Positions 226 through 60,132 are shown, counted from the stretch's first letter. The stretch: DNA of 64,000 bases from Hyalangium minutum (GCF_000737315.1 NZ_JMCB01000006.1:310001-374000), one strand, 5' to 3'. The notes: generated by a model from the letters alone, not told the origin. Numbers and translations: made by a program.

Positions 226-1170
226 TCACCGCACCGGCTGCCCCAGCCGCTCCCATCGCACGTGCCAGTCCGGGCCGAGAGAGAAGTGCACGGAGACGGC
301 CACGCCCTTCACGCTGAGCTCAGGCACTCCACCCCAGAAGCGGGAGTCGTAACTGTTCGTGCGGTTGTCCCCGAGCACGAAGAGCTGCCCCACGGGCACG
401 GCACATCCGCCATCCTTCGGCTCCAGGCCCTGGGGGCAGCGTCCGTCCTCCGCGGGGAAGCGGCCCTCATGCGCGAAGGCCAGGTCGTGCCTCACACGGT
501 AGCGGCGCGAACCGAGGACTTCTTCGTACTCCTCGCAGTCTCCTCCCTCCGTGGGCCCCTCGGCCGACTCGCAGGAGCCCACCAACTTCCGCTCCAAGGG
601 CTGCCCGTTGAGGAGGACCACGCCGTTGCGTATCGCCACGGTGTCTCCGCCTCGGGCGACCACGCGCTTCACGAAGTCCTGCTCCGGCTTCTGGGGATCG
701 GGAAAGACGATGATCGAGCCACGCTCAATGGGCTGCCACTGCCAGGGGGTGCGCACCGTGCGATCCGCCACGAACTGATCCCCTTGAAGCAGGGTCGGCT
801 CCATGCTCGAGCCCGGCACCCAGAAGGGCTCGGCAATGAACCTGCGGTTGAGCCTCGCGGCGGCCTGGCCCGAGAGCAGGAACGCCACGGCCAGCACGGC
901 GGCCCGCCCCGTGCTCGGGAGACCTCGGGAGGAAGGGCGTAACAGCGCCGCATCGATGATGGAGCCCAGCTGCAGCACCACGATGAGCACCGCCCCCGCC
1001 ACGCCCGTGAACAGCAGCGAGGCCTGCAACAGGAGCAGCGCGAGAAACCATGCCAGCCCCCGCTGCCACCGGCCCAGCACCCCGTGACCCGCTCCCGCCG
1101 GAGTACATAGCGCCACGAGCACTGCCACCGTCCGGCGCCGCCAGCCCACCTTTCCTTCTTCACCCACCAT
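226..1170 (-). CDS. lepB: Signal peptidase I with N-terminal membrane segments
   Basis: PGSSMEPTL (Ser), DFVKRVVA (Lys), GDNRTNSYDSRFWG. Confidence 0.9.
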   Translation of the reverse strand: MVGEEGKVGWRRRTVAVLVALCTPAGAGHGVLGRWQRGLAWFLALLLLQASLLFTGVAGAVLIVVLQLGSIIDAALLRPSSRGLPSTGRAAVLAVAFLLSGQAAARLNRRFIAEPFWVPGSSMEPTLLQGDQFVADRTVRTPWQWQPIERGSIIVFPDPQKPEQDFVKRVVARGGDTVAIRNGVVLLNGQPLERKLVGSCESAEGPTEGGDCEEYEEVLGSRRYRVRHDLAFAHEGRFPAEDGRCPQGLEPKDGGCAVPVGQLFVLGDNRTNSYDSRFWGGVPELSVKGVAVSVHFSLGPDWHVRWERLGQPVR

Positions 1171-1197: not shown

Positions 1198-4002
1198 TCA
1201 GCTCAAGGCCTCACTGCACCGGGGGCACACCTCGCTCTCCTGCTCCACCTCTTCCGCGAACCCGCCGCAGCGCGGGCACTTCGCGCCCCAGGCAGGCAGC
1301 ACCTCGGCCGCCAGCTCCGCGCCGTTCCATGCCTGGGCCAGCGCGAGCGGCCGCGCCTTCGGCCCAGGCTCATCCACCAGCTCCACCTGGCTCACCCGGA
1401 ACAGCGCGGGCAGCTCTTCGATGTGCGCGAGGAGAAAGGCTTTCGCCTCACCGGCCGCCGCGAGCACCACCCGTGCATTCAGAGAGGAGCCGAGCCGCTC
1501 CTCTCGCAGTGTCTCCTCGATGAGAACCCGCACCGCGCTGCGCATGGCCAGGAGCCGCGCGTACCGCTCCGCCAGCTCCGGGTCCATGGGCCCCACGGGC
1601 TGGGGCAGGTCCGTCAGAAAGACACTCTCCGCAGACCGGCCCGGGAGCTGCTGCCAGGCCTCCTCGGCCGTGAAGCTCAGGATGGGCGCCAGCAGCCGCA
1701 GCAGCGAGGAAGCCACCTCGAACAGCACAGTCTGCGCGCTCCGCCGCTCCCGCCCCGAGGCACTCGCCGTGAGGAGCCGATCCTCGATGATGGCGAAGTA
1801 CGTCGCGGACAGCTCCGCCGCGCAGAAGTCCATCACATCCGAGTGCACGCGGTGAAGCGCGTGAGCCTCATAGGCCTCGCGCACGCGCGCCACCATCTCC
1901 GACAGCCGTCCCCGCGCCCACGCATCCAGCGGGAGCAACTGCGAGGCGGGCACGGAGTCCCTCGCGGGCTCGAAGCCGGAGAGGTGGCCCAGCGCGAAGG
2001 CCAGCGTGTGGCGAAGCTTCGCGAGGTCCTGGATCAGCGCCTCACGGATCGCGTCCGACAGCGGCACATCGTTCTGGAGATCGCTGAAGGCCGCCCACAG
2101 CCGCAGCACCTCCGCGCCGTACCGCACCACGAACGTCTTGGCGTCAGCGTCGCGCTCTTGGCTCCTGGACAGCTTCTGGCCATGGGCATCCACCCCGGAG
2201 CCGTGCGTGAAACAAGTCCGGTAGGGAGACGCGTCCCGAGTGCCCACGGACACCACCATCGCCGAGGCGAGCCAGCCGTCGAGCTGCTCACGCTCCGTCA
2301 GGCACAGGTCCGCTGGCAGGCCCTGTCGCGGACCGAGCACCGCCGAGAACATGCACGCCGCATCGAACTGCGGATCCAAGGTATCGGTCTCGCGCCGGAA
2401 CCGGCTCCCGCCACACGAGGCACACCGGAAGTCCGCGCCCAGGAACTCCTCCACCGGCGTGCGGTGCCACACGCTCGCGTCCGCCTTCTCCACCGTCGCT
2501 GCCACGCGCTCCATCAGCTCAGGAGACACCACCGCCTCGCCGCAGCCCTCGCAGTACGCGATGGGCAGGGGGACGCCCCAGCTCTCCTTCCGGCTGATGC
2601 ACCCATCCGCCCGCTTCTCCAACACGTCCCGAAGAGCGCCGCGCCCGCTGTCAGGCCTCCACTGCACCCGGTCTGCTTCCTCCATCGCCCGCTCGCGGAG
2701 CGTCTTCCCGCCCGGCAGCGGCGAATCCAACGCGATGAACCACTGAGCGGAGGCGGCCCGGATGACGGGCTGATGGCAGCTCCGGCAGTGCGGCAGGGAG
2801 TGCTCCACCGTGTCCTTCTTCGCATTCAGCAGGGCACCCCGCTCCGCCAGCAACTCCAGGATGACCGAATCGGCCGCGAGCACCCGCATCCCCTGGAGCG
2901 GCGTGCCCACCGTCTCGTCATAGCGCCCGTTCTGGCCCACGGGGTTGTAGAGCTCCAGACCGAGCTTCGGGTCCACCTCGGCGTCTCCCTGGCCGAGCCC
3001 CGGCGCCACGTGCACCAGCCCCGTGCCCTGCTCCAACGTCGAGGGCCCACCCAGCACCACCTGCCCTGTCCGCTCCAGGAACGGGTGCTGGTAGCGAAGG
3101 CCCGCCAGGTCCTCGCCGCTCGCGTACACGAGGATCTTCCGCAGATCATCGAACGCCACCGTCTCCACATCGCCGCCGGGCAGGCGCGCGTTCTTCATCA
3201 CCAGCTCGTCCGCCTTCACCTCGGCGAGCACCTTGGCCAGCAGGTCCTTGGCCACGCAGAGCACGCGCTGGCCTGCCTCGTAGAAGACGTACTCGAAGTC
3301 CGCATTCACCGAGAGGGCCACGTTGCCCGGCAGTGACCACGGCGCCAGCGTCCAGGTGACGAAGAAGACCTCGCGCCCTTTCAGCGAGGAGAACCGCTCC
3401 GCCACCTCGGGCCCCGCGCGGAAGGCCACGTAGACCGAGGGGCTCAGGCGGGATGCTTCCTCCACCTCATGCTCCCCCAGCACCTTCTGTTCCTCGGGGC
3501 ACCAGAGCAGTGGCTGCTTCCTCCGGGAGAGCAGCCCGCGCCGAGCCAGGGTGGCCAGCTCACGCAGCTCACGCGCCGCGTACGCCGGATCCTGCGTCCG
3601 GTATGGCTTTGCCTCACTCCCAAGCCCCCCGAGACGATGGAGCACGGCCTCCTTCTGTTGGAGGAAATCGTCCTCGGACGGCATGCCATGGGTGTCCCAG
3701 CCGAAGAGGAAGTCACACCGGCGCCCGCTGAGATGGCGGTACTTCCGCACGATGTCCTGGAGCACCACGCTCAGCGCCTGGCCCATGTGCAGCGGGCGGC
3801 GGGCCTCCAACGGCCGAGCCGCCAGCACGAAGGGCTCGGCGCCCGTGCGCTGCTCCCGCATCCGAGCCCCAAGGGAGAGCTCGGACCACCTCGCCAGCAT
3901 CCGAGGCTCCACCCGCTCTGGCTCTCCCTGCGGAGGAAGCTCGGTGCGCGGGAGGTTCAGGGTGCCGCGGTAGTCCTTCGGAGGCGCGCCAACGTCGCTC
4001 AT
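1198..4002 (-). CDS. Isoleucyl-tRNA synthetase-like protein with degenerate catalytic motifs (probable pseudo-synthetase paralog)
   Basis: YRGTLNLPRTELP start, LHMGQA, GWDTHGMP, GTGLVHVAPG, ISRKESWGVP, KLSRS, C-terminal CPRC..CPRC Zn finger. Confidence 0.85.
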   Translation of the reverse strand: MSDVGAPPKDYRGTLNLPRTELPPQGEPERVEPRMLARWSELSLGARMREQRTGAEPFVLAARPLEARRPLHMGQALSVVLQDIVRKYRHLSGRRCDFLFGWDTHGMPSEDDFLQQKEAVLHRLGGLGSEAKPYRTQDPAYAARELRELATLARRGLLSRRKQPLLWCPEEQKVLGEHEVEEASRLSPSVYVAFRAGPEVAERFSSLKGREVFFVTWTLAPWSLPGNVALSVNADFEYVFYEAGQRVLCVAKDLLAKVLAEVKADELVMKNARLPGGDVETVAFDDLRKILVYASGEDLAGLRYQHPFLERTGQVVLGGPSTLEQGTGLVHVAPGLGQGDAEVDPKLGLELYNPVGQNGRYDETVGTPLQGMRVLAADSVILELLAERGALLNAKKDTVEHSLPHCRSCHQPVIRAASAQWFIALDSPLPGGKTLRERAMEEADRVQWRPDSGRGALRDVLEKRADGCISRKESWGVPLPIAYCEGCGEAVVSPELMERVAATVEKADASVWHRTPVEEFLGADFRCASCGGSRFRRETDTLDPQFDAACMFSAVLGPRQGLPADLCLTEREQLDGWLASAMVVSVGTRDASPYRTCFTHGSGVDAHGQKLSRSQERDADAKTFVVRYGAEVLRLWAAFSDLQNDVPLSDAIREALIQDLAKLRHTLAFALGHLSGFEPARDSVPASQLLPLDAWARGRLSEMVARVREAYEAHALHRVHSDVMDFCAAELSATYFAIIEDRLLTASASGRERRSAQTVLFEVASSLLRLLAPILSFTAEEAWQQLPGRSAESVFLTDLPQPVGPMDPELAERYARLLAMRSAVRVLIEETLREERLGSSLNARVVLAAAGEAKAFLLAHIEELPALFRVSQVELVDEPGPKARPLALAQAWNGAELAAEVLPAWGAKCPRCGGFAEEVEQESEVCPRCSEALS

Positions 4003-4079
4003 GAAGGACGGGCCGTAGCACGCCCCTCCAGGCCCATCAATGCGCGCCGGGCCGCAGTGTCAGCCGCGAGCGCCGGGGC

Positions 4080-4766
4080 TCACTGCGGCGCTTCGAGCAG
4101 GTCATCATCCGCGCCGTTGCGGCTCATCACGATGACCGTCAGCCCACCGCCCTCGCGGGGGCGGCTCAGCACTTCCACCGACTCGTTGCCCTTGCGGAAG
4201 ACCCCAGGCTTCGTCTCCGTGTAGCCCTTCTTCGGCATGGCCTCACGGTAGAAGTCCTGCAGTTGCTGCTGCGTGGCCTTCGTGGTGTACGAGAGCGACT
4301 TGCCCGACTCGATGTTGATGGTGACGAGGTTGTCCGCCGCCGGGTACACCGCCACGAAGGCCGAGTCCTCGGGCTTGCGGATCTGCCCCACGTTGGCCGT
4401 GCCCAGCAGCACCTTCGTCGTCTTGCCGTCCGGGTTGGGCCGCATGATGACGGAGTAGGCCAGCAGCCGGTCCACATCCAGCGCGGTCAGCGTAATAGCC
4501 CCGTGCACCACGGTCTGCCCCTTGGGCGGGGGAATGAAGAAGCCGGCCTTCTTGAACTGCTCGGCGAAGTGCTTGAAGAGGGCGTCCGGCTTCCAGCTGG
4601 ACGTCACCGCGTGCAGCTTCATGGGGATGCCGAGCGCCTCCTGCGTTCCCGCCACATCCACGTGGTGGACGATGCCCGGCACATCCCACTCAAAGTCACC
4701 CGCTGCCGACACCGCGGGGGCCAGCGCCCCCACCACCAGCAGCACTCCGGCCAGCGCAGTCCTCAC
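4080..4766 (-). CDS. Secreted hypothetical protein, last gene of the Tad pilin cassette
   Basis: GTG start at 4766 overlaps the upstream TGA (GTGA); signal-peptide-like N-terminus. Confidence 0.7.
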   Translation of the reverse strand: MRTALAGVLLVVGALAPAVSAAGDFEWDVPGIVHHVDVAGTQEALGIPMKLHAVTSSWKPDALFKHFAEQFKKAGFFIPPPKGQTVVHGAITLTALDVDRLLAYSVIMRPNPDGKTTKVLLGTANVGQIRKPEDSAFVAVYPAADNLVTINIESGKSLSYTTKATQQQLQDFYREAMPKKGYTETKPGVFRKGNESVEVLSRPREGGGLTVIVMSRNGADDDLLEAPQ

Positions 4767-5698
4767 GGCGGCGGCACCCCGCCCAGCCACTTCTCCTGCC
4801 GATCCGCGTACGCCGAGTGCCTGCTGCCCGTGCGCACGTTGGTCATCCAGTTCGCGGGGTCCGAGTCTCCGCCCGTCATGCCGGAGTCCGGGCCCTTCAT
4901 GTAGCTGAGCCGGAACCGGCTCTCCAGGTCGTCGCCGGGCCCCCGCTGCACCACGGCCATGGCCATGGCCCTGCCCGCCGCGGGGCCTTCGCCGCCCAGC
5001 TGCCGGTACATCGGGTGGACCAGCTCCTTGAAGCCCGTGTTGGTGCAGCCCTGGAGCGCGCAGTCCTCCTTCTCGTTCGGAGCACCGGACAGGCCCCAGT
5101 CATCCAGCAGAATGGCGATCTTGCCCGACCCGCAGGCCCCGCCGCTGGGCAGACCGATGGCGCACACCGGGATGCCACTGACGTTCGGGTAGTTCTTCTC
5201 CTTGAAGAAGCCGCTGTTGGCCTCATTCACGAACTCTTTGGGGAAGCGATCCAACACCCGGATCTGCGCGGTCGCGCTGCAGCTCATGCCACCCTCGCCG
5301 GCCTGGTACGGCTTGAGCCGGGCCTGGCTGGTGTTGATGCCGCCCACGTTGTCCTGCTGGCACTGCACCTGGAGACCGTCCGCCTCGGTGAACACCAGCC
5401 GGGGCGTGCCCCCGCCTGCCGAGGTACGCCCGTCGAAGTTGCCATAGCGGCTGGTGGCATCTCCCCCCGCGGAGGAGATGGCCGAGGTGCGCTTCGAGTA
5501 GTTGTTGGGGTGCACGTGCATCTGCTTGGCCGTGGTGTCCCAGAGGGCCCCGGCCGCCGCCTCGTGCACCTTGGGCATCAGGTAGCCAATCTCCGCCAGG
5601 TGGATGCCCCACACCAGGATGGAGATGAACACCAGCAGCCCCAGGGCCGTCTCCACCATGGCCTGCCCGCGGCGCGAGCGCATGCCGTGCGTTCTCAT
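4763..5698 (-). CDS. TadE-like minor pilin
   Basis: RRGQAMVETALGLLVF prepilin site plus hydrophobic helix; ATGA overlap with the upstream gene. Confidence 0.8.
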   Translation of the reverse strand: MRTHGMRSRRGQAMVETALGLLVFISILVWGIHLAEIGYLMPKVHEAAAGALWDTTAKQMHVHPNNYSKRTSAISSAGGDATSRYGNFDGRTSAGGGTPRLVFTEADGLQVQCQQDNVGGINTSQARLKPYQAGEGGMSCSATAQIRVLDRFPKEFVNEANSGFFKEKNYPNVSGIPVCAIGLPSGGACGSGKIAILLDDWGLSGAPNEKEDCALQGCTNTGFKELVHPMYRQLGGEGPAAGRAMAMAVVQRGPGDDLESRFRLSYMKGPDSGMTGGDSDPANWMTNVRTGSRHSAYADRQEKWLGGVPPP

Positions 5699-7287
5699 TG
5701 GAAGCCTCGGAAGCCTGCGTTGTACAGCGCCTTGGCCGCGTCACCCGCCCACGGCACCCCGGCTTGCTGCATCGTCGTGGGAATGTCGCCGCCGGGCATC
5801 TTGCCCTGCTGGTCGATGTCCGGCGACACCAGGGTGGCGCGCCAGTAGGGGTTCATCAGATTGGGCGGCTCCTTCCAATCATCCCCCCGGTGGTAGTACG
5901 CCATGCCCGTGGCCAGCGCCGTCTGCTTGGAGATGTCGATGGAGGCCCCGCCCGTGGCCCTCAGGTTGGAGCCCAGCTGCTTGCCCTCACTGCGGGTGCC
6001 CCGGTTGGAGAAGTGCTTGGGCGAGCCCGGCACGAAGGCGAAGTCGAAGTCCAGGAAGACGCTCTTGTCCAACTGGCCGGAGCCGCCGCCGTAGTCCCGC
6101 TGCAGCAGCGCGTACAGCTTGGGCTGTCCGTACGCGTCCGCCTGGTCCTTCACCTTGGCCTCGGTGTAGTCGTAGGTGATGGGCCAGTTGCCGCCCGCGA
6201 TGTCGCCGATGCCCGAGTGGGTTTGTGTGTCAGACGCGTTCGGGCACGTGCCGCGGCTCCACTCGTGCTTGTCCGGGTTGGACTCGAGGTTGGCCAGCAC
6301 GTCGGCGCTCAGGGACAGGGGGGGCACCGGGATGGGGCACCCGCCAAAGCGGCCGAGGTAGAAGAGGTTGCCGTGGTCATCCGAAGTCGCCGCACCCCAG
6401 TTGGCCTCCGCGCCGTGCACAGGGCCTTGAAGCTGATCCGAGCGGGCGGAAGCCCCCTCGCCCCCGAGATAGGCGATGGTCCCATACCCTTGAACGAGCT
6501 GCATGAGCTTGGAGGTCATCAGCATGGTGCCGCCACCGCGGCCCGTGGTGAAGGAGTCGTCACGGGTGCCCATGTAGATTTCATACTGATGGATGCTGGT
6601 GCCGCCGACCAGCCCGTTGCACCAGGCGCCCTGGTTGCAGTCGGAGGCGGCCTCGCGCGTGGCGACCATGTCCGCCGCATCCGGTGCGGTGATGGGCCAG
6701 GGGCTGCCGCCTGCCTGGGCGATCACCTTCTTGGCGATGTTCTGGCCCTGCAGCAACCCCGCCAGCATGTCGGAGTTCGCCTTGAAGTCGCTCTCCAGGA
6801 AGGTCGCCGTCGTGATGTTGTATTCGCGGACCTGGGCCGAGGCGGCCTTGTCCACCCCGTCCCATACGCCCTGGATGCGTTGGGCCTCCTGGCTGAGCTT
6901 CTGCTTCCACAGGCCGAAAGCGATGCCCGCCGGGATCTTCTGAGGGATGGGGCACACGCCGGCGATATAGGCGGCGATGAAGATCGAGGCATCCTGCTGC
7001 AGCGCCGCCAGCGCGTCCCGGTAGATGGAGGTCCAGCTGATATAGGCCTGCGTGGCGGACCGGGCCACCGTCAACGCCCACGCGGTGCGGTGCGCGATGG
7101 CGACCGTGTTGAAGGTGCGGGCGGTGGCCACCGCGTTGCTGTACGCGGCCGCGTCCGCCAGCGTCTGCAGCTCCATGCGCTCACGCACCCGCATACCGAA
7201 CGAGACGGTGAGCAGCACCATCAGCGACAGGAACAGCAGCATGAAGGTGAAAATGATCAGGGTTTGTCCGCGACGGAGCATCGTCAT
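5695..7287 (-). CDS. TadG-like (Tad domain) pilus protein
   Basis: RRGQTLIIFTF..., ELQTLADAAAYS motif. Confidence 0.8.
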   Translation of the reverse strand: MTMLRRGQTLIIFTFMLLFLSLMVLLTVSFGMRVRERMELQTLADAAAYSNAVATARTFNTVAIAHRTAWALTVARSATQAYISWTSIYRDALAALQQDASIFIAAYIAGVCPIPQKIPAGIAFGLWKQKLSQEAQRIQGVWDGVDKAASAQVREYNITTATFLESDFKANSDMLAGLLQGQNIAKKVIAQAGGSPWPITAPDAADMVATREAASDCNQGAWCNGLVGGTSIHQYEIYMGTRDDSFTTGRGGGTMLMTSKLMQLVQGYGTIAYLGGEGASARSDQLQGPVHGAEANWGAATSDDHGNLFYLGRFGGCPIPVPPLSLSADVLANLESNPDKHEWSRGTCPNASDTQTHSGIGDIAGGNWPITYDYTEAKVKDQADAYGQPKLYALLQRDYGGGSGQLDKSVFLDFDFAFVPGSPKHFSNRGTRSEGKQLGSNLRATGGASIDISKQTALATGMAYYHRGDDWKEPPNLMNPYWRATLVSPDIDQQGKMPGGDIPTTMQQAGVPWAGDAAKALYNAGFRGFQ

Positions 7288-7298
7288 CCCTCGGTCTC

Positions 7299-8027
7299 TC
7301 AGGGGGCGCAGTTCTGCTGACTGAAGTATTGCTGCAGCGCAGGGGTCATCATCCGCATCGAGTAGCTGGCGGTGATGGGGAAGATGAACTCATTGGCGCT
7401 GCGCGAGGTGTACTCGCCCAGGATCTGCGCCTCCATGGTGCTGTTGGCGCTGGTGGTCCAGTTCGCGTTCTTCTCCGCGAGAATGAGCGGGTTGGCCGCG
7501 GTGTAGTCCTGGATGGCGAAGTGCGCCCGGAACATCTTGGTCATCACCCAGTTGGCGAAGGGGATGCGCATCGGGTACCAGTAGACGAGCCGGACCTCGA
7601 GCCGCATCGGCGGGGCGAGCCCCTGGTCGAAGTTCAGGTCGTCCGCGTTGACGTTCGTGGGCTGCTCACGGATCAGCCAGATCATGTCCCCGTTGAAGCC
7701 GGGCAGGGGGGCCAGCTTGTTGTTCCGGTGCGCGGAGAAGGCCGCCGCCAGAGCGTCCGGTGTATTGGTGCGCTCCATCGTGGGCAGCAGCGCGGCAATG
7801 GCCGCGTGCATCATCCTCTCGCAGTTGCCGTTGTTCACGCTGCCAGCGCGCGTGGCACGGAAGGCCGCGTACTGCGTCATGATGCGCGCCTGCAGCATCA
7901 TGAAGAGCTGCAGCGTGCCCAGAAAGAGGAAGATGACCAGCGGCAGGGTGAGGGCAGACTCGACCGCCGCCTGACCCGACTCGCCATTGCGAGGCTTTTT
8001 TCCGGAGGAAGCCATTTTGAGCCACAT
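7299..8027 (-). CDS. TadE family minor pilin (start 8027 or 8015)
   Basis: SGQAAVESALTLPLVIFLFLG...YAAFRATRAG. Confidence 0.85.
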   Translation of the reverse strand: MWLKMASSGKKPRNGESGQAAVESALTLPLVIFLFLGTLQLFMMLQARIMTQYAAFRATRAGSVNNGNCERMMHAAIAALLPTMERTNTPDALAAAFSAHRNNKLAPLPGFNGDMIWLIREQPTNVNADDLNFDQGLAPPMRLEVRLVYWYPMRIPFANWVMTKMFRAHFAIQDYTAANPLILAEKNANWTTSANSTMEAQILGEYTSRSANEFIFPITASYSMRMMTPALQQYFSQQNCAP

Positions 8028-8149
8028 GCTGACACCAGTAGGTGTTCGGGGCCTATCCGCCGGTTGGCCGCGATCAGAAAGCTGAGGGTATTGATCGGCC
8101 CACACTCACGGTGCGGGTCTTTCCTTGACGCACCGGGCCGAAGCGAGGC

Positions 8150-8527
8150 TTAGCGGCGGCGGATGCCCTGGCTGCCGTGGATGGGCCCCTGAGAGGCGTT
8201 CGCCTTCTTCTCCTCCTCCTTCTTCTTCTTCTTTTCGGCCGCGGCCTTGGCGTCCTCTTCGCCGCCACAGCCCTTGGCGCACTTCTTATAGACCTTGATG
8301 AAGCGGCTGGAGCAGCCCTCCACGCACTCCTGGAACTGGGCCTGCGCGGCGGTGGTGTCGCCCGGCTTGCCGCAGCGATCGACACAGGACGCGGTCTCGT
8401 TGCTCTGGTTGGCCACACAGCGCCGCTCGCACTCGTTGTGCTCGGCCAGCGCGGGCCCTGCCAACAACCAGGCGCTCAAGGCTGCGGCGGCGTACCACGG
8501 GGTGATGCTTGCACGGGCTCGGGTCAT
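8150..8527 (-). CDS. Small secreted Cys-rich protein
   Basis: Signal peptide ending ALA; four CxxxC motifs; Lys/Glu-rich tail. Confidence 0.65.
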   Translation of the reverse strand: MTRARASITPWYAAAALSAWLLAGPALAEHNECERRCVANQSNETASCVDRCGKPGDTTAAQAQFQECVEGCSSRFIKVYKKCAKGCGGEEDAKAAAEKKKKKEEEKKANASQGPIHGSQGIRRR

Positions 8528-14273: not shown

Positions 14274-14399
14274 CGACTCCCCGGCGTATCCCCCGGAGTG
14301 TCGGCTTTCCCACCGCTGCGAGTCGCGAGGGTTGATCCTCCTTCACGCCGGGTGAGACCCTTGGGTGTCAGGGCAATGCGCTCCGGGGGGGGGCCGCGA

Positions 14400-16799
14400 A
14401 TGTCCAATAGATCGCGCACGAGGAGTGCCCAGATCGCCTGGGGCCTCGTCTGGGCGGGGAGTCTGGCCAGTCCACTCACAGGTGCCTTGGGCCTGTTGGG
14501 TTGGGGACTGGACCGCGCCTTCGCGAACTCGGGGCCGCTGGGCCTGATTGATCTGGCACCGCACACGGCGCTCGGGCTCATCCTCGGGGGCATCTCCTTG
14601 GGATTGCTGCGCCCGGAGGAGCCAGGCCTGCTTCGCAGGGCCGTGGGCCGGGCCTGCGCCGTGGGCATGGGCGTCATCGGCGTCGCCATCCTCTTCCAGT
14701 ACTTTGGCCTGGAGTTGGTGCGGTCCGCGCTGACGCAGCCGTGGATTCCCTCGCTGTCGCGGCCACCCTCCGAGACAACGGAGATGACCGCCACCGCCCT
14801 TTGCTTCGTGCTGCTGGGGGGTGGGCTGCTGCTGCTCGGGCGCTCGCAGCCCCATCCCACGTGGCGGATGGAGGTGCTCATCCTCCCCGCGCTGTTCGTC
14901 ACCCTGATGATGATCCACGGGCTGCTCCACGGAGCGCTCGTGTCCGCGAACACGCCGGTGCTCCTGTCCCACACGGGGATGGGGCTGCAGACCACGGTGG
15001 GGCTGCTGCTGCTCGGCGTCGGGGCCCTGTGCTCGCGGCCAGAGCAGGGACTGATGATCCACATCACCCGGTCCACGCTCGGGGGTTACCTCGCGCGCCG
15101 GCTCGTGCCGGTGACGCTGCTGGGCCCGCTGCTGTTCAGCGTCCTGCTCGAGGTGCTCGTCCGGTTCCACCTCCTGGGCCAGCCCTTGAAGACACCGCTG
15201 TTCGCCACGGTGGCGAGCCTTGGCAGCGCAGGGCTCGTGCTCCTGTCTACCTCGCTGTTGGACCGTCTCCACCGGCAGCGCCAGCAAGCGAACGCCGCGC
15301 TCGCGGCCTCCGAGGCACGCTACCGGAACCTGCTGGAGACCGCGCCGGATGCCGTGGTCGCCGTGGATCAGCATGGCCTGGTGCGCTTCGTGAACGCGCA
15401 GGTGGAGCGGGTGTTCGGCTACCGGCGTGAGGAGCTGATCGGCCAGGACGTGGCGGTGTTGCTCCCCGAGCCCTATCGGGAGCAGCACCGCCTCTTCCGC
15501 GAGGCTTACATGCGCAACCCCGTGCTTCGCTCGGTGGGTCAGGCGGTGCCACTGCGGGGCCGGCACAAGGAGGGCTCCGAGTTCCCCGTGGAGGTGAGCC
15601 TCAGCCCCTGCCAGACGCCAGAGGGGTTCACGGTCACCGCCATCATCCGGGACGTGACGGAGCGCGAGCAGCACCTGGCGCGCCTGCAGGACGCGCGCGC
15701 CGAGGCCGAGCGGGAGCGCCAGCTCCTACAGACCGTGGTGGACAGCGCCCCGGTGGGCATCCTCTTCGTGGACCCCGAGACGGACAAGGTGCGGACCAAC
15801 GTCGCGCTCACGGCCATGCTGGGCCGCCCGGCGGAGACCACCGAGGGCCAGGGCCCCTACTACGGGAACTTCCTGCACCCGGACGGGCGAAGCGTGAGCC
15901 TCGATGAGTTCCCCTCCACCCGGGCCCTCACCGGCCAGGCCGTTCCCGCCCAGGAGTTCCTCGTCGTCCGTCCGGATCGGCAGCTGCCGGTGCTGGCCTC
16001 GGCGGCGCCTGTGTTCGGCAGCTCCGAGGCGGTGCGCGGCGTGGTCGTCACCATCCAGGACATCACCGCCCGCCGCGAGCTGGAGCAGCTCCAGCAGGAC
16101 TACGTGGGGCTCATCTCGCATGACCTGCGCAACCCGCTCCAGGTGATTGCCCTGCGCACCCAGCTGCTGCAGCGGCTGCTCCAGGAGCGAGGCCTCACGC
16201 GCGAGGCGGCCCTGACCGGGAGCCTGCTCCAGAACACGCGGCAGATGAACTGGCTGGTCGAGGAGCTGCTGGAGAACTCCATTCTGGAGGCCGGGCAGGT
16301 GGAGCTCCGCCGGGAGCCCACGGACCTGGTCCACTTCCTCGAGGAGGTGCTCGAGCGCGACCTGCCGCCCGATGCCCGCGAGCGATTCCACCTCCAGTGG
16401 ACGAGCGCCATGCCACCCGTACCGGTGGATCCCCAGCGCCTTGAGCGCGTGGTCGTGAACCTGCTCACCAACGCGCTCAAGTACAGCCCAGCGGGCACGC
16501 CCATCGAGCTGCGCCTCCAGCAAACCGGGGAGGCCGTGGAGCTCTCCGTGCAGGACCACGGCCTGGGTCTGCTGCCGGAGGATGCCGTGCGCCTCTTCCA
16601 GAAGTACTACCGGACGAAGGAGGGCCGTCGGGCAAAGGGCGCGGGGCTGGGGCTCTACATCTGCCGGCTGATCGCCGAGGCGCATGGAGGCCGCATCCGT
16701 GTAGAGAGCGAGCCAGGCCAGGGGACCATCTTCACCGTCACCCTCCCCATGACGCTCCCCGCGCAGGAGAACTCCCAGACGCAACAAGGGGCCGCCTGA
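14400..16799 (+). CDS. Membrane PAS-domain sensor histidine kinase (start 14376 or 14400)
   Basis: Several TM helices, two PAS domains, SHDLRNP H-box, NLLTNALKYS, GAGLGL. Confidence 0.9.
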   Translation: MSNRSRTRSAQIAWGLVWAGSLASPLTGALGLLGWGLDRAFANSGPLGLIDLAPHTALGLILGGISLGLLRPEEPGLLRRAVGRACAVGMGVIGVAILFQYFGLELVRSALTQPWIPSLSRPPSETTEMTATALCFVLLGGGLLLLGRSQPHPTWRMEVLILPALFVTLMMIHGLLHGALVSANTPVLLSHTGMGLQTTVGLLLLGVGALCSRPEQGLMIHITRSTLGGYLARRLVPVTLLGPLLFSVLLEVLVRFHLLGQPLKTPLFATVASLGSAGLVLLSTSLLDRLHRQRQQANAALAASEARYRNLLETAPDAVVAVDQHGLVRFVNAQVERVFGYRREELIGQDVAVLLPEPYREQHRLFREAYMRNPVLRSVGQAVPLRGRHKEGSEFPVEVSLSPCQTPEGFTVTAIIRDVTEREQHLARLQDARAEAERERQLLQTVVDSAPVGILFVDPETDKVRTNVALTAMLGRPAETTEGQGPYYGNFLHPDGRSVSLDEFPSTRALTGQAVPAQEFLVVRPDRQLPVLASAAPVFGSSEAVRGVVVTIQDITARRELEQLQQDYVGLISHDLRNPLQVIALRTQLLQRLLQERGLTREAALTGSLLQNTRQMNWLVEELLENSILEAGQVELRREPTDLVHFLEEVLERDLPPDARERFHLQWTSAMPPVPVDPQRLERVVVNLLTNALKYSPAGTPIELRLQQTGEAVELSVQDHGLGLLPEDAVRLFQKYYRTKEGRRAKGAGLGLYICRLIAEAHGGRIRVESEPGQGTIFTVTLPMTLPAQENSQTQQGAA

Positions 16800-23304: not shown

Positions 23305-25275
23305 CTACAGCTCCACCTGCGTGCCCAGCTCCACCACGCGGTTGGGCGGAATGCGGAAGTACGCCGTGGCGCTGCGCGCGTTGCGGCTCATCCACGAGAA
23401 CAGCGCCTCGCGCCACATCGCCATCCCCGGCTTCTTCGAGGGAATCAGCGTCTCCCGCCCCAGGAAGAACGAGGTGCTCATCAGCTGGAACTGCAGCCCC
23501 TTCTCGCGCCCCTTCTTGAGGATGTCCGGGATGCTCGGGTTCTCCATGAACCCATAGCGCGCGATGAGCCGCACGAAGCCCTGCTCGATGGGCTGCACCT
23601 CCACCCGCTCCTCGCTCGACACGTGCGGCACGTCCTCCGACAGGATGGTCAGCAGCACCACCTGCTCGTGCAGCACCTTGTTGTGCTTCAGGTTGTGCAG
23701 CAGCGCCGGCGGCGAGCCCTCCGGGTTGCCCGTCATGAACACCGCCGTGCCCGGCACCCGCACTGGCGCGTGCTCGCCCTGGAAGCTCTCCAACAAGTCC
23801 TTCAGGTCCATGCTGGCCGCGCGCAGCTTCGCCGCCAGAATTTCACGCCCGCGCTTCCACGTCGTCATCAGCGTGAAGAGCACCGCCGCCAGCGCCAGCG
23901 GGAACCAGCCGCCCTCCGGAATCTTCACCGCGTTGGCGCTGAAGAAGAACAGCTCCACGGTCAGGAACACCAGCATGATGGGCAGCGCCACCGCCCGGCC
24001 CACGTGCCAGCGCTCGCGCGCCACCACGTACGCCATGCACGTCGTCATCAGCATGGCCGTGGACACCGCGATGCCGTACGCCCCCGCCAGGTTGCTCGAG
24101 GTCCGGAAGCCCAGCACCAGCAGCACCACGCCGATCAACAGCATCCAGTTGAGCCCTGGCAGGTAGATCTGCCCCTTCTCCTCCGCCGAGGTGTGCACCA
24201 CCTCCATGCGCGGGCAGTAGCCCAGCTGCATCGCCTGCCGCGTGTTCGAGAACGCTCCGGAGATGACCGCCTGCGAGGCAATCGTCGCCGCCCCCGCCGC
24301 CAGCGCCACCAACGGGTAGCGCGCCCACTCGGGCGCGATCAGGAAGAACGGGTTGCGCGACGCGTCGGGGTTCCTCAGCAGCAGCGCCCCCTGCCCCAGG
24401 TAGTTGAGCATCAGCGAGGGCAGCACCAGCGCGAACCACGCCCAGCGGATGGGCGTGCGGCCAAAGTGGCCCATGTCCGTGTAGAGCGACTCGCCTCCCG
24501 TCACCACCAGGAAGACGGCGCCCAGCACCAAGAAGCCGTGCCCGCCGTTGTGCACGAAGAACAACACCCCCTGCACCGGCGACAGCGCCCACAGCACCGA
24601 CGGGTTGTGCACCAGCTCCTTCACCCCCAGCACCGCCAGCACGATGAACCACAGGCACATGAACGGCCCGAACACGTTGCCGATGCCACCCGTGCCGTGC
24701 CGCTGCACCAGGAAGAGTCCCAGGAGGATGATCAGCGTGATGGGCAGCACGTAGGGCTCGAAGATGGGCGTGGCCACGCTCAGGCCTTCCACCGCGCTGA
24801 GCACCGAGATGGCCGGGGTGATGATGCCGTCTCCGTACAGCAACGACGCCCCGAAGATGCCCATCGTCACCAGCAGCGGCCGCGCCCGGGGCGCCTCACC
24901 GGACCTCAGCCGCTGAGCCACCAACGCCATCAGCGCCAGGATGCCGCCCTCGCCCCGGTTGTCCGCCCGCAGCACGAACACCAGGTACTTCACCGACACC
25001 GTGATGATGAGCGACCAGAAGATGAGCGACAGCACCCCCAGCACGTTCTCGTGGGACGGGGCGATGCCGTGCGGTCCCGTGAAACACTCCCTCAGTGCGT
25101 ACAGCGGACTGGTACCAATGTCGCCGTAGACGACGCCAATCGCCCCAATGGCCAGCAGGGCTGTCCGTTTGACGGCGCCGTCCTGCCCTCCGGTGTTCGT
25201 GGGGGGAGCTTCCGTGGTTGCGTTCACGGCTCCCGCTTTAGCCGAACCCTGGCTGGGAGCAACGGGCTCGCGCAT
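23305..25275 (-). CDS. kup: KUP/HAK/KT potassium transporter
   Basis: GVVYGDIGTSPLY, ADNRGEGG, GGESLYTDMGHF; start trimmed to ATG 25275. Confidence 0.95.
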   Translation of the reverse strand: MREPVAPSQGSAKAGAVNATTEAPPTNTGGQDGAVKRTALLAIGAIGVVYGDIGTSPLYALRECFTGPHGIAPSHENVLGVLSLIFWSLIITVSVKYLVFVLRADNRGEGGILALMALVAQRLRSGEAPRARPLLVTMGIFGASLLYGDGIITPAISVLSAVEGLSVATPIFEPYVLPITLIILLGLFLVQRHGTGGIGNVFGPFMCLWFIVLAVLGVKELVHNPSVLWALSPVQGVLFFVHNGGHGFLVLGAVFLVVTGGESLYTDMGHFGRTPIRWAWFALVLPSLMLNYLGQGALLLRNPDASRNPFFLIAPEWARYPLVALAAGAATIASQAVISGAFSNTRQAMQLGYCPRMEVVHTSAEEKGQIYLPGLNWMLLIGVVLLVLGFRTSSNLAGAYGIAVSTAMLMTTCMAYVVARERWHVGRAVALPIMLVFLTVELFFFSANAVKIPEGGWFPLALAAVLFTLMTTWKRGREILAAKLRAASMDLKDLLESFQGEHAPVRVPGTAVFMTGNPEGSPPALLHNLKHNKVLHEQVVLLTILSEDVPHVSSEERVEVQPIEQGFVRLIARYGFMENPSIPDILKKGREKGLQFQLMSTSFFLGRETLIPSKKPGMAMWREALFSWMSRNARSATAYFRIPPNRVVELGTQVEL

Positions 25276-25445
25276 CCCTCCACGCCTCCATTCCAGCCCG
25301 AGCGGAAGGCTCCTACCTGCCACGTGGATGTACGCCCGCACGTAAGGCCATGTGCGTGTGTCAACGGCTGCACTTCCGGCGCGAGACCCCTTGGCGCAAG
25401 ACGCACCTCCCGTGTGCGATCCTGTCCTGGGGGGAGTTCCACAGT

Positions 25446-28400
25446 ATGGCCTCGTTGGGCACCAGCCAGACGCAACACGATCCCGGCACGCCGCTGGGCT
25501 TGGAAGAACGACTGTCGATGCTGGCCGATGCATCGCGGGCCCTGGCGGACGCAAGCCTGGAGCCCCCCGCGGTGCTCGAGCGGCTGTGCGCGCTGGTGGT
25601 GCCCTCGCTGGGCCAGGCGTGCGGCCTGCGCCTGCTGTCCGAGGATGGCCTGTGGCTGCAACCGGTAGGCTCGGCCCACGCGAACCCCTCCGCGCGAGAG
25701 CTCTTCCAGACGCTCGTGTCCGGACCCCAGCGCGCGGACGAAGGGCTGTCCTCTCTCGTCGTCCGCAAGGCCGAGTCCCTGGCGTTGGCGGCACTGCCCC
25801 CGGAGGTGCTGAAGCGCTCCGTGGCGCCTTCGTTCCGAACGGCGGCCGAGCGCTTTCCCTTCAGTGACTTGCTCGTCGTCCCCATGCGCGCGCGAGGGCG
25901 CGTGCTCGGCACCCTGGCCATTGCCCGGGGGCTGGACGTGCGCCCCTTCGATGACACCGAGCGGATGCTCGTGCAGGAGATGGCGGACCGGGCCACGGTG
26001 GCGCTGGAGGCGGCGCGCGCCTACGAGGCGGAGCGCAAGGCCCGGCTCGACGCGGAGGTGGCCGCCAACCGCATCCTGCGCATGCAGCGCGCCACCGCGG
26101 CGCTGTCCGAGGCGGTGACTCCAGCGGACGTGGCCGGCGCGGTGATGCGCGAGGCCATGGATGCGCTGGGGGCGGACCAGGGTGTCGTCACCGTGGCCAG
26201 CGAAGACCCCTCGTGGCTGGAGATCCTCGTCAGCCGCAACCTGCCTCCTCTCTCCCTGGACCGCCTGGCGCGCTTCCCGAGCAGCGCGCCGCTGCCCACC
26301 GCGGAGGCCTACCGCACCCGGCTCCCGCTCTGGATGGAGTCTCCGGACCAGCTCGCGGTGCGCTACCCCTCCTCCTTCCAGCGGCAGGAGCTGCTCGCCC
26401 AGGCCGTGGCCAGCCTCCCGCTGCTGGCGCATGGGCGCGCGCTCGGCGTGCTCTCGGTGGGCTTCCACAGGCCTCGTCCCTTCCCCGAGAGCGAGCGGGC
26501 CTTCTTGAAGGACCTGGCGGGACAGGCAGCCCAGGCGCTGGAGCGAGCCCGGCTCTACACCGCCGAGCAGCAAGCGCGCACCACCGCTCAGCGTGCCGCG
26601 GAGCGCACCACCCGCCTCCAGGTCGTCACCTCCGAGTTCTCCCTGGCGCTCACGGCCACGCGCGTGGCGGAGATCGTCGTGGACCATGGCGTGGCGGCGG
26701 TGGGGGCGCGCAGCGGTGGGCTGTGGCTCATCGAGCCGGAGGGCACCCACGCGCGGCTGGTCCGCACCGTGGGCTACCCGCAGGAGATGGTGGAGCGCTT
26801 CCAGCGGCTCCCGCTGAACCTGAGCGCGCCCCTGATGGAGGCGCTGCGCGAGGGCCGGCCGGTGTGGCTGGAGACGCCCGAGGCCGCCACCCACCGCGAT
26901 CCAGGACTCTCGCAGCGGCAAGGCGCCACCCCGCCCCCCGTCACGCCGTCCATGGCATGCCTGCCGCTGCGCTCCGAGGGACGCACGCTGGGGGCCCTGG
27001 TGCTGAACTTCACCGAGCCCCGCCGCTTCGACTCGGAGGAGCGCGCCTTCCTGGAGCTGCTGGTGCACCCCGCCGCGGAGGCCCTGGCCCGGGCGCGGTT
27101 GCAGGAACAGCAGCAGGCGGCCCAGGCGGCGTTGCGCGAGGCGCACCAGACGCTCTCCGCCGTCATCCAGGCCTCTCCGGCCGCCATCGTGTTGATGGAT
27201 CCGGATGGCACGGTGCGCATGTGGAGCGCCGCCGCCGAGCGCATCTTCGGATGGACGGAGCAGGAGGCCCTCGGGCGCCCGCTGGTGGCGGTGCCCCCGG
27301 ACAAGCAGGCCGAGTTCCGCGACAACCTGGCCCGGGTGGCCCGAGGCGAGCCGCTCATGGGCGTGGAGACCCAGCGCCAGTGCAAGGATGGAACGCGCAT
27401 CGACGTGGCGCTGTGGGCCTCGGCGGTGCGCCACACCAGCGGCCAGATGCAGTGCGTCTACGTCATCACCGACATCACCGAGCGCAAGCGCGCGGAGGAC
27501 GCCCAGCGCTTCCTGGCGCGGGCCGGGAGTGAGCTGGCCAGCAGCCTCGATGACGAGGCGACGCTGGAGCGCGTGGCGCACCTGGCCGTGCCCTCGTGGG
27601 CGGACAGCTGCACCATTCACCTGCTGGAGGAAGACGAGCTGCGGTGCGTGGCCGCCGCGCACACGGGTTCTGGGCCCGAGGCCTCGCTGTCAGAGCCGGA
27701 GGCGGACGCCGTGGCCCGCATCCTCGCCTCAGGCCAGCCCGAGCTGCGCCGCGAGTCCACACCGAAGCCCTGTACCTCCCTGCGCGTGCCGCTGGTGGTG
27801 CGAGGCCAAGCACTGGGGGTGCTGTCGCTCACCACCACCCGGCGGCTCTATGACGCACGAGACCTGGCCCTGGCACAGGAGCTGGCGCGGCAGGCGGCGC
27901 TGGCCATCGACAACGCCCGGCTCTACCGCGAGGCGCAGCACGCGGTGCGGCTGCGCGAGGAGTTCCTCTCCATCGCCAGCCACGAGCTGAAGACGCCCAT
28001 CAGCGCGCTCCAGCTCCAGGTACAGATTCTCCTGTCCACGCTCGACCGCTCGCCCTCGGGCCCTTCGCCGGAGCGGCTGCGCCGCAGCCTGGACACGGTG
28101 GACCGGCAGGTCCGGCGGCAGACGCAGCTCATCAATGATTTGCTGGATGTCTCGCGCATCTCGGCCGGGCGGCTGCAGCTGCGCCCCGAGCCCATGGAGC
28201 TGTCCTCGCTGGCGCGCGAGGTGGCCGAGCGCTTCGAGCCCGAGCTGGCGCGCGCGGGCTCGTCCCTCCAGCTCCAGCTCTCCTCGGAGGTGGCGGGGCA
28301 GTGGGACCGGCTGCGGCTGGATCAGGTGGTGACGAACCTGCTGTCCAACGCGGTGAAGTACGGCCGGGGCAACCCCATCCAGCTCGTTACCTCAGTGGAG

Positions 28401-28637
28401 GACTCCCACGTGCGGCTGTCGGTGAAGGACGGCGGCATCGGCATCGCGGAGGAGGACCTGAAGCGCCTCTTCAACCGCTTCGAGCGCGCGGTGTCCGAGC
28501 GCAACTACGGCGGCTTCGGACTCGGGCTGTGGATTGCCCGGCAGATCATCGAGGCGATGGGCGGGCGCATCCAGGTGGAGAGCCAACTGGGCGTTGGCTC
28601 GACCTTCACCGTGGAGCTCCCCCGCCCGCCGGCTTGA
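25446..28637 (+). CDS. Cytoplasmic multi-GAF/PAS sensor histidine kinase
   Basis: Repeated GAF domains, PAS, ASHELKTP, NLLSNAVKY, GFGLGL. Confidence 0.92.
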   Translation: MASLGTSQTQHDPGTPLGLEERLSMLADASRALADASLEPPAVLERLCALVVPSLGQACGLRLLSEDGLWLQPVGSAHANPSARELFQTLVSGPQRADEGLSSLVVRKAESLALAALPPEVLKRSVAPSFRTAAERFPFSDLLVVPMRARGRVLGTLAIARGLDVRPFDDTERMLVQEMADRATVALEAARAYEAERKARLDAEVAANRILRMQRATAALSEAVTPADVAGAVMREAMDALGADQGVVTVASEDPSWLEILVSRNLPPLSLDRLARFPSSAPLPTAEAYRTRLPLWMESPDQLAVRYPSSFQRQELLAQAVASLPLLAHGRALGVLSVGFHRPRPFPESERAFLKDLAGQAAQALERARLYTAEQQARTTAQRAAERTTRLQVVTSEFSLALTATRVAEIVVDHGVAAVGARSGGLWLIEPEGTHARLVRTVGYPQEMVERFQRLPLNLSAPLMEALREGRPVWLETPEAATHRDPGLSQRQGATPPPVTPSMACLPLRSEGRTLGALVLNFTEPRRFDSEERAFLELLVHPAAEALARARLQEQQQAAQAALREAHQTLSAVIQASPAAIVLMDPDGTVRMWSAAAERIFGWTEQEALGRPLVAVPPDKQAEFRDNLARVARGEPLMGVETQRQCKDGTRIDVALWASAVRHTSGQMQCVYVITDITERKRAEDAQRFLARAGSELASSLDDEATLERVAHLAVPSWADSCTIHLLEEDELRCVAAAHTGSGPEASLSEPEADAVARILASGQPELRRESTPKPCTSLRVPLVVRGQALGVLSLTTTRRLYDARDLALAQELARQAALAIDNARLYREAQHAVRLREEFLSIASHELKTPISALQLQVQILLSTLDRSPSGPSPERLRRSLDTVDRQVRRQTQLINDLLDVSRISAGRLQLRPEPMELSSLAREVAERFEPELARAGSSLQLQLSSEVAGQWDRLRLDQVVTNLLSNAVKYGRGNPIQLVTSVEDSHVRLSVKDGGIGIAEEDLKRLFNRFERAVSERNYGGFGLGLWIARQIIEAMGGRIQVESQLGVGSTFTVELPRPPA

Positions 28638-42082: not shown

Positions 42083-42297
42083 GTCGGAAGCTCACGCCCG
42101 CTCGCCGTCCTGGCCTACCTGACAGGGCGTCACCCGGCTCCCAACCTAAGCGGGGGCGGGGGAAGAATTGTCACCATTCGGATACACTTCGGGGTGAGCA
42201 TCTCCTCCCTCTCGAAAAAAGCCCCGGTTTCCCCCACCGGACAGTAGATCTGAAAAGTTCCGGCCCGGATAAGCTTGGGCATACTTCCGCGCATCCC

Positions 42298-60099: not shown

Positions 60100-60132
60100 A
60101 GCGTGGCAGCGCCTCTGTGTACGCTTTCGTCC

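Follow-up and report, generated by a model that had tools for sequence, protein, structure and literature searches.

An eroded isoleucyl-tRNA synthetase gene kept under purifying selection at the native ileS locus of Hyalangium minutum

The window analyzed here is a stretch of 64,000 nucleotides (positions 310001-374000 of contig JMCB01000006.1) from assembly GCA_000737315.1, which is that of the soil bacterium Hyalangium minutum DSM 14724T (PMC5441343). It contains an open reading frame (ORF) of 934 codons whose product, P0001, resembles type 1 isoleucyl-tRNA synthetase (IleRS1) from end to end, but in which the signatures of the synthetic site are eroded while the frame is intact. We report that this gene is the ancestral ileS at its native position, that a family of uncultured relatives is eroded at the same locus, and that the degenerate gene is kept under purifying selection about 2-3 times weaker than that on a working IleRS. 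We interpret it, with a probability of about 0.58, as a displaced ancestral IleRS1 that has been retained as a folded, noncatalytic protein, that is, as a pseudo-synthetase.

The ORF starts with ATG and has no internal stop codon. Its product matched the IleRS1 structures PDB 8c9e and 1ffy over its whole length (E about 1e-140), contains the Pfam domains tRNA-synt_1, Anticodon_1, and zf-FPG_IleRS, and gave an AlphaFold (AF2) model that superposed on IleRS1 of S. aureus (1QU2) with a TM score of 0.84. The intact frame and the collinearity with IleRS1 that an earlier sequence-only reading of the window had described were borne out, as was the retention of the Cys clusters: all of the pairs (C406/409, C484/487, C527/530, and C909/912/926/929) are present. 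Judged by Pfam, the predicted model, and the Cys ligands, the IleRS1 fold, the anticodon-binding domain (in which residues 751-800 are highly conserved), and the C-terminal zinc domain are all in place. An assignment of P0001 to IleRS2 or to the mupirocin-resistant enzymes MupA and MupB was ruled out by its scores against the corresponding models (193 and 184 bits, as compared to a cut-off of 1900) and by its C terminus, which is a type 1 zinc domain.

Alignment with canonical relatives showed the motif alterations that had been listed from the sequence alone (Table 1), with the single correction that GPPYANG reads RPLEARR (the earlier "ARPLEAR" was one residue off); DVWFDSA reads DPQFDAA. Among the signatures of the isoleucine/adenylate pocket, WDTHG, with its Asp, Q573, and W577 alone are retained; P64 is kept as well. 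The segment after GWDTHGMP, which had been noted as unusually short, proved to have suffered a clean in-frame deletion of 90 nucleotides (30 codons) directly after WDTHGMPSE, and with it 13 residues that are invariant in canonical enzymes. Our reference set consisted of 106 canonical relatives, taken from the 120 best database matches and from cluster members, among which 328 sites are at least 97% identical. P0001 keeps 227 of these sites and differs at 101, with the 13 deleted residues to be counted in addition; canonical Hyalangium and Myxococcus proteins keep 327 of the 328. A loss on this scale is far beyond chance. In keeping with it, the score of P0001 against TIGR00392 (509.9 bits) falls below the curated equivalog cut-off of 621.4, whereas canonical relatives score 869-874.

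Which of these changes speaks to inactivity? In a search of 1.84 billion representative proteins we found HxGQ and HxGT, as well as KLSKS, KISKS, and AMSKS, in otherwise intact IleRS1s, and hence the HMGQ and the K-L-S of P0001, which the sequence-only reading had taken as signs of a dead enzyme, prove nothing by themselves. The second Lys of KMSKS is very rarely lost in intact IleRS1s: nearly all of the intact representatives with variant motifs keep xxxKS, and the rare exceptions, such as P0192 (RLSE-), bear other motif changes. It is the loss of this residue, the other part of that earlier argument, that is diagnostic in P0001.

The gene had also been described as a paralog, and here the locus speaks otherwise. 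The order of genes is DsbA, RimK, sigma-54 activator, Tad cassette, the IleRS-like gene, and Mut7-C, followed by FAM210, two lspA genes, and lgt. Exactly the same position is occupied by the canonical ileS of H. versicolor, of H. rubrum, and of a metagenome-assembled genome (MAG) of Hyalangium sp., and by the degenerate gene at every locus of a degenerate relative that we fetched. The gene for P0001, which is 62-65% identical to the ileS products of other Hyalangium, is the positional ortholog of canonical ileS. The hosts are close relatives, as can be seen from Mut7-C, which is 87-98% identical (dS 0.09-0.56) across the degenerate and related genomes. Also conserved between canonical and degenerate genes is an element of about 44 nucleotides just before the ATG. 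A scan for the sigma-70 consensus recognized no promoter in it; conceivably it might act as a promoter or mark a leaderless start.

Erosion of ileS is not confined to H. minutum. We found it in about 22 sequence clusters (from metagenomes, MAGs, and read-archive assemblies), at the same locus wherever the locus was fetched, and they form a graded series in the order C<B<D<A. Group C (P0005, P0016, and P0078, "Hyalangium sp.") has HVGH and KMSRS and scores 708 bits against TIGR00392. Group B (P0003, P0004, and P0007) has HAGH and RLSRS and scores 688 bits, so that both of these groups lie above the cut-off. In group D (P0047 and others, 745-793 residues; 549 bits) the zinc domain, which groups A-C keep, is absent and the KMSKS loop is deleted or unrecognizable. 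Group A, the most eroded, comprises H. minutum, P0002, P0121, and P0122 (510 bits; 473 for P0002) plus P0050 and P0070, which at 629 and 594 residues have large internal deletions that removed about 300 residues of the core. An apparent N-terminal truncation of P0121 was discarded as an artefact of gene calling, the full frame being intact, and a link to the NCBIfam family ileS_w_GNAT was set aside as uninformative, because canonical relatives score equally high.

The active-site positions themselves vary within the family. The second Lys of KMSKS is found in none of the 22 members (nine have Arg, four Gln, and one Leu, and in eight it is deleted) but in all 106 canonical proteins. The fourth position of HIGH, which is His in 100 of the 106, is His in nine members, Arg in five, and Gln in four, with Pro, Leu, and Asp also represented, and the motif as a whole reads HMGQ, HAGH, HAEL, HVGH, HMGR, QASD, and others. 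The positions of PPYANG, DVWFDS, and EGSDQHRGWF likewise change from group to group (A, B, C, and D). This variation excludes a conserved active site in the family. The four groups appear to have a single origin: in a neighbor-joining tree they form one clade inside the canonical Hyalangium sequences, a placement for which long-branch attraction is a possible cause, and at nine sites that do not vary among canonical proteins, at least three of the groups have a derived residue in common. Degenerate proteins lie at distances of 0.40-0.71 from outgroups as compared to 0.22-0.25 for canonical Hyalangium proteins, and their branches are 1.6-3 times longer.

The length of an ORF is in itself weak evidence in this genome, since an ORF of 637 amino acids lies antisense to the IleRS-like gene (window 1423-3336, plus strand), most likely as a by-product of 70% G+C. 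The ratio of nonsynonymous to synonymous substitution rates, dN/dS (omega), was estimated by the method of Nei and Gojobori (NG86) with bootstrap intervals. The ratio was 0.41 (0.32-0.51) for H. minutum and P0002, 0.49 (0.40-0.60) for H. minutum and group B, and 0.67 (0.56-0.83) for P0002 and group B. Closer pairs gave lower values, namely 0.30 (0.20-0.44) for H. minutum and P0122 (96% identical), 0.29 (0.20-0.42) for H. minutum and P0121 (94% identical), and 0.27 (0.18-0.40) for P0121 and P0122. Canonical ileS of H. versicolor and H. rubrum gave 0.23 (0.18-0.28), and the flanking genes for DsbA, RimK, the sigma-54 activator, and Mut7-C gave 0.04-0.23. Neutral evolution of the H. minutum sequence was simulated at the composition and transition bias of that sequence, and on the simulated data the estimator returned 1.1-1.5. 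At the divergence of H. minutum and P0002 (t=0.13), moreover, the simulation produced 3-6 new in-frame stop codons per lineage, and at most 4% of the replicates stayed open.

No stop codon was found in at least 10 independent degenerate sequences. Every one of the internal indels of groups A-D and of the deletion variants, at least 12 in number, has a length divisible by three (3, 18, 24, 33, 42, 45, 54, 57, 60, 123, 141, and 774 nucleotides), and the sole frame-breaking event in the family is the C-terminal truncation of group D. All 10 zinc-ligand Cys residues are retained, in 100% of cases, wherever the region is present. A neutrally decaying pseudogene, with ratios near 1 and frequent frameshifts, is ruled out by these observations, and the suggestion that the intact frame reflects selection was upheld.

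Could the gene nevertheless encode a functional IleRS, perhaps the sole IleRS of the genome, whose unusual active site has been remodeled, for example, for resistance to an IleRS inhibitor? The ratios of 0.27-0.30 in recent pairs are near that of canonical ileS, variants of the HxGQ and KLSKS types exist in apparently intact enzymes, the WD Asp, Q573, W577, and P64 are kept, and no second ileS was found in the sequence read. Against this, the second Lys is replaced or deleted in every member, the catalytic positions differ from one ortholog to the next, which a conserved active site would not allow, 30 codons that include 13 invariant residues are gone, relatives that lack the whole second Rossmann half keep their ORF, and the TIGR00392 score is under the equivalog cut-off. 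Finally, an altered HXGH motif is not tolerated by IleRS1 (PMC10485003). We regard this explanation as very improbable. A decoy for inhibitors that mimic the adenylate, one of the roles offered by the sequence-only reading, is also unlikely, because the pocket is not conserved: the motifs of the Ile-AMP pocket vary freely among orthologs.

If the catalytic site is dispensable, what is being conserved? In pairs of canonical Hyalangium genes, the proportion of nonsynonymous differences (pN) is 0-0.02 in the KMSKS region, and residues of about 200-300, in the CP1 (editing) domain, are among the fastest (0.12-0.15). The degenerate clade shows the opposite pattern: between H. minutum and P0002, residues 201-350 of CP1 have a pN of 0-0.03, and between H. 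minutum and group B the KMSKS region reaches 0.26. For the CP1 body (residues 229-330), the ratio of pN to that in the remainder of the gene was 0.12-0.42 across nine degenerate pairs (Fisher p 1e-4 to 1e-7), as compared to 0.93-1.5 in three canonical pairs. In absolute terms the CP1 body has kept roughly its ancestral constraint while the remainder of the gene relaxed, and the strongest remaining constraint lies in this body and in part of the C-terminal, tRNA-binding half. The CP1 body contains an insert that is specific to Myxococcaceae and is predicted in the AF2 model to be a β-hairpin (residues 263-290), and the stretch VLCVAKDLLAKVLAEVKADELVMKNARLPGGDVETVAFDDLRKILVYASGE is nearly identical across groups A-D. 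We considered whether the conservation stems from an RNA or DNA element embedded in the gene, and rejected this. Rfam and tRNA scans found no Rfam family or tRNA in the conserved segment, and synonymous differences persist there (pS, their proportion, is 0.10-0.28), which indicates that the constraint acts on the protein.

The prominence of CP1 raises the question of whether the editing site still works. We take H331 and D340 of P0001 to correspond to H333 and D342 of E. coli IleRS, and we assign the equivalents of T241, T242, and N250 on the same assumption; the spacing of nine between the His and the Asp matches the E. coli numbering. T242 is important for hydrolysis in E. coli IleRS. By this presumed correspondence, the T-rich peptide of P0001 retains the equivalents of T241 and N250 but has lost that of T242. 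In the family as a whole, the presumed equivalents of T241, N250, H333, and D342 are kept in 22/22, 21/22, 18/20, and 18/18 sequences, whereas the T242-equivalent Thr, present in 106/106 canonical proteins, is found in 0/22 (Leu, Ala, Pro, Arg, or Ser takes its place), and the T243-equivalent residue is kept in 3/22. The earlier description of the editing motifs as altered holds for TTTPW and GHG, then, but the presumed editing-site His and Asp are retained and the His that was lost from GHG is another residue.

These facts bear on the possibility that P0001 is a trans-acting CP1 enzyme, in which the synthetic site is dead, the editing domain hydrolyzes aminoacyl-tRNA with altered specificity, and the rest is a tRNA-docking scaffold for proofreading or regulated deacylation beside a replacing IleRS. 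Besides the retained residues, the CP1 body is the most constrained part of the protein, the changed pocket residues are themselves conserved within groups (WTLAPW and APGLGQGD in groups A and B), and groups A-C have the full tRNA-binding architecture. The uniform loss of the T242 equivalent weighs against such an enzyme, however, as do the absence of the D342 region from P0070 and of the zinc domain from group D and the loss of the wobble-side Trp913; the equivalences on which the argument turns are, in addition, presumed. We consider an active editing enzyme improbable.

We return to the interpretation of the gene as a displaced, noncatalytic IleRS1. On this hypothesis aminoacylation would have been taken over, in the common ancestor of the clade, by another IleRS that was acquired or that diverged at some other place in the genome; the old ileS would no longer charge tRNA-Ile and would survive through a task for which the fold is required and the chemistry is not. 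Most probably this task would be the docking of an RNA (tRNA-Ile or a related one) or of a protein partner by means of the CP1 body and the C-terminal domains. A binding role for tRNA had been put forward in the sequence-only reading, and two features speak for it: R742 is kept in 20/21 family sequences, and its counterpart in IleRS2 ARD1 is an arginine critical for the reading of A35 and U36 (preprint 10.64898/2026.02.03.703510); and groups A-C retain the zinc domain.

Several observations weigh against this hypothesis. N665 and Y669 align with anticodon-reading residues of IleRS2 ARD1 and both are lost in P0001, as is the canonically invariant Trp913 of the zinc domain; with the absence of that domain from group D, these losses make specificity for tRNA-Ile doubtful. 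The confidence of the AF2 model (mean pLDDT 87.8) draws on the canonical homologs that were aligned. The rise in omega is roughly uniform over the domains of the degenerate gene, and lineages differ in the domains that they have lost (the zinc domain and KMSKS loop in group D, and about 300 residues of the core in P0050 and P0070). Such progressive, lineage-specific erosion may fit ongoing reduction and decay equally well. As for the replacing enzyme, the sequence read comprised the window plus 8.8 kb past its start (locus L001); tblastn with canonical IleRS matched only this locus within the window, and no second IleRS named as H. minutum, and thus no canonical copy of the Myxococcaceae type, was found among the 120 best matches or the 30 clusters read, many matches being without an organism name. 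Bacteria normally carry either ileS1 or ileS2, and both together were found in Bacillaceae only, in the surveys that have been published (10.1101/2022.02.09.479832; PMC10485003).

A serious rival, if to our minds an unlikely one, is that the gene, once replaced by another IleRS, is a slowly dying relic with no function of its own, heading for deletion, in which residual selection merely avoids a toxic, misfolded, or dominant-negative product or keeps transcription and translation going into the downstream genes. The graded series and the lengthened branches are as expected of such a relic, and so are the 2-3 fold rise of omega in all domains, the large and differing deletions in close relatives (P0070, P0050, and group D), and the occupation of the T242 position by five different residues, with no newly shared motif across all four groups. 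Yet omega is 0.27-0.30 even in the most recent pairs, long after inactivation; at least 10 lineages have neither stop codons nor frameshifts; and conservation extends to the start and stop codons, the upstream element, and every zinc ligand. Constraint is, moreover, concentrated on one surface-forming segment that is identical across groups A-D, and silencing or deletion would be an easy escape from toxicity, yet the ORF has persisted across a dS of about 0.3-0.6.

A further argument for the relic comes from outside Hyalangium, where similar degenerate proteins in many unrelated lineages suggest a generic aftermath of displacement. The 148 best representatives in a global search included about 13 further long homologs of IleRS1 in which HIGH and KMSKS are both missing and the T-rich peptide is altered (P0188, P0190, P0202, P0226, P0227, P0232, P0236, P0237, P0249, P0250, P0290, P0295, and P0304). 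They are 28-41% identical to P0001 and 25-47% identical to each other, with compositions that range from GC-rich-like to AT-rich-like, and their low mutual identity points to independent events. P0188, together with P0313, represents another uncultured lineage of Myxococcota; the nearest intact protein related to P0188 is 52% identical to it, and P0188 has in common with P0001 the change of CPRCW to CPRCG. Degenerate IleRS1 relics or pseudo-enzymes thus seem to arise repeatedly. A bolder version of our hypothesis, which we put forward tentatively and hold to be possible but rather doubtful, is that displaced IleRS1 genes are repeatedly recycled into noncatalytic CP1/tRNA-binding proteins, the one in Hyalangium being a tRNA-Ile-docking factor such as a sensor, a sequestrator, or a trans-acting deacylase for the replacing enzyme.

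How does P0001 compare with known systems? It shares with canonical IleRS1 (1QU2/1FFY, 8C9E, and the ileS products of H. versicolor and H. rubrum) the fold (TM 0.83-0.84), the order of domains, the zinc Cys residues, and, in the sister species, the locus. It differs in a deletion of 30 codons from the catalytic fold, in the loss of the second Lys of KMSKS, of PPYANG, of EGSDQHRGWF, and of the T242-equivalent Thr, and in the shift of constraint away from the catalytic motifs and onto the CP1 body. Several pseudo-synthetases, namely HisZ, the HisRS-like domain of GCN2, SLIMP, and the noncharging second LeuRS of Sulfolobus islandicus, keep the fold and act by binding tRNA or a partner enzyme. P0001 resembles them in that a synthetase fold is under selection after loss of the residues for aminoacylation, but they are paralogs or fused domains beside a working synthetase, whereas P0001 is the product of the original class Ia IleRS gene at its original locus. 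Genomes of Bacillaceae that have both ileS1 and ileS2 exemplify the presence of two IleRS genes that we infer for H. minutum; there, both are active and ileS1 is mandatory (10.1101/2022.02.09.479832; PMC10485003), whereas in H. minutum it is IleRS1 that would have lost its chemistry. A mutant of P. megaterium IleRS1 with a swapped HIGH motif (PDB 8C9F) is among the best structural matches of the P0001 model and likewise keeps the fold with a disabled signature motif, but it is an engineered change of a single motif, whereas P0001 is a natural loss of several that has been kept by selection.

In the literature we found no description of a pseudo-enzyme derived from IleRS, of a duplication of IleRS in myxobacteria, or of IleRS2 in Myxococcota, and no account of a pseudo-synthetase encoded not by a duplicate but by the original gene at its old position. 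If displaced IleRS1 genes are indeed recycled, the family would be the first of pseudo-synthetases derived from IleRS, with a stepwise series (C, B, D, A), a cultivable type strain, and parallels in other phyla. The case would show the fate of an essential synthetase gene after displacement, for which rapid loss is the usual assumption, and the graded erosion of the active site together with the shift in constraint points to a second role of the editing-domain body, possibly one that existed already in the working enzyme. Because DSM 14724 can be cultivated, the hypothesis lends itself to direct experiment. In practice, moreover, the milder forms (those of groups B and C, which score above the TIGR00392 cut-off) are labeled "isoleucine--tRNA ligase" by automated annotation. 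The ileS gene is used as a phylogenomic marker, and such relics can mislead annotation and marker-gene trees alike.

Table 1. Features of the IleRS-like gene of H. minutum and of the region just upstream, in window coordinates
Feature	Position	Strand	Basis
P0001, IleRS1-derived ORF, degenerate positional ortholog of ileS	1198..4002	-	ORF call, Pfam, PDB matches, synteny
C-terminal zinc-binding domain; C909, C912, C926, and C929 kept, Trp913 replaced by Gly	1216..1278	-	Alignment
Helical anticodon-binding domain (aa 641-830)	1513..2082	-	Pfam; R742 kept; N665, R668, and Y669 changed
KMSKS position, reads KLSRS (aa 610-614)	2161..2175	-	Alignment; second Lys lost
TEREQLDGWL (aa 569-578) in place of EGSDQHRGWF; Q573 and W577 retained	2269..2298	-	Alignment
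HVAPGLGQGD (aa 331-340); canonical GHGQED reads GLGQGD; H331 and D340 retained, His of GHG replaced by Leu	2983..3012	-	Alignment
CP1 (editing-domain) body (aa 229-330) with Myxococcaceae-specific hairpin insert	3013..3318	-	pN comparison, secondary structure of model
T-rich editing peptide WTLAPWSLPGN (aa 217-227); canonical WTTTPW	3322..3354	-	Alignment
Junction of 90-nucleotide in-frame deletion (aa 110/111)	3670..3675	-	Alignment
HIGH position, reads HMGQ (aa 72-75); canonical HAGH	3778..3789	-	Alignment
Upstream element of about 44 nucleotides (…ATTGATGGGCCTGGAGGGGCGTGCTACGGCCCGTCCTTC-ATG); no Shine-Dalgarno sequence	4003..4046	-	Alignment

The same-strand setting of the gene between Tad-like genes (upstream) and lepB (downstream), noted by the sequence-only reading, was confirmed. 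The lepB paralog (signal peptidase I, Peptidase_S26; window 226-1170, minus strand) lies 27 nucleotides downstream of the IleRS-like ORF. It is present in only some of the group A genomes (L001, L005, L091, and L094) and absent from L090, which is 96% identical, from groups B-D, and from the canonical species; it is thus an insertion rather than a conserved partner. Directly upstream of the IleRS-like gene, the Tad-like cassette, which consists of TadE, Tad, and three small ORFs (window 4080-8527, minus strand, or L001 5476-9923), is hypervariable between near-identical genomes, as judged by comparison of L001 with L002, L005, and L089. Between H. minutum and a group B genome its proteins are 27-55% identical, with a dN/dS of about 0.6-1.0, and the flanking genes are 94-98% identical, which looks like allelic replacement or diversifying selection. 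H. rubrum has a second copy of the cassette after ileS (L007 13021-16360). A recombination breakpoint lies inside the IleRS-like gene at about window position 3030 (codon ~325), as seen in comparison of L001 with L090, the contig of P0122. Over codons 1-324 the two proteins are identical, as are the upstream TadE and p306, and the other genes of the Tad cassette are 97-99% identical; after codon 325 there are 40 residue differences, and the pS of Mut7-C is 0.08.

In the canonical Hyalangium sp. MAG and in the group C genome (L092 8833-9999 and L093 1940-3109), a gene for a class A beta-lactamase-like protein (Beta-lactamase2) has been inserted immediately before ileS; it is absent in H. minutum. 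A two-gene insertion at L001 17365-19232 (about 3.4-5.2 kb beyond the start of the window), which is absent from H. versicolor, encodes an AAA_15/AAA_21 ATPase like PtuA/AriA of the Septu and PARIS defense systems (PADLOC E 4e-31), followed by a protein of 276 residues without a match.

Finally, we note some features elsewhere in the window. A 1131-residue protein with a CHAT domain, for which PADLOC gave no match, is encoded at 60103-63498 on the plus strand, and three large PAS/GAF sensor histidine kinases are found on that strand within 30 kb (14298-16799, 25350-28637, and 41800-44841). A Kup-type K+ transporter (23305-25794) and an S9 peptidase (29274-31265) are encoded on the minus strand. 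Also on the minus strand, at 45427-48645, is the gene for a 1072-residue class II lanthipeptide synthetase of the LanM type (DUF4135 and LANC_like; E 1e-121 and 9e-69), which probably marks a lanthipeptide gene cluster.

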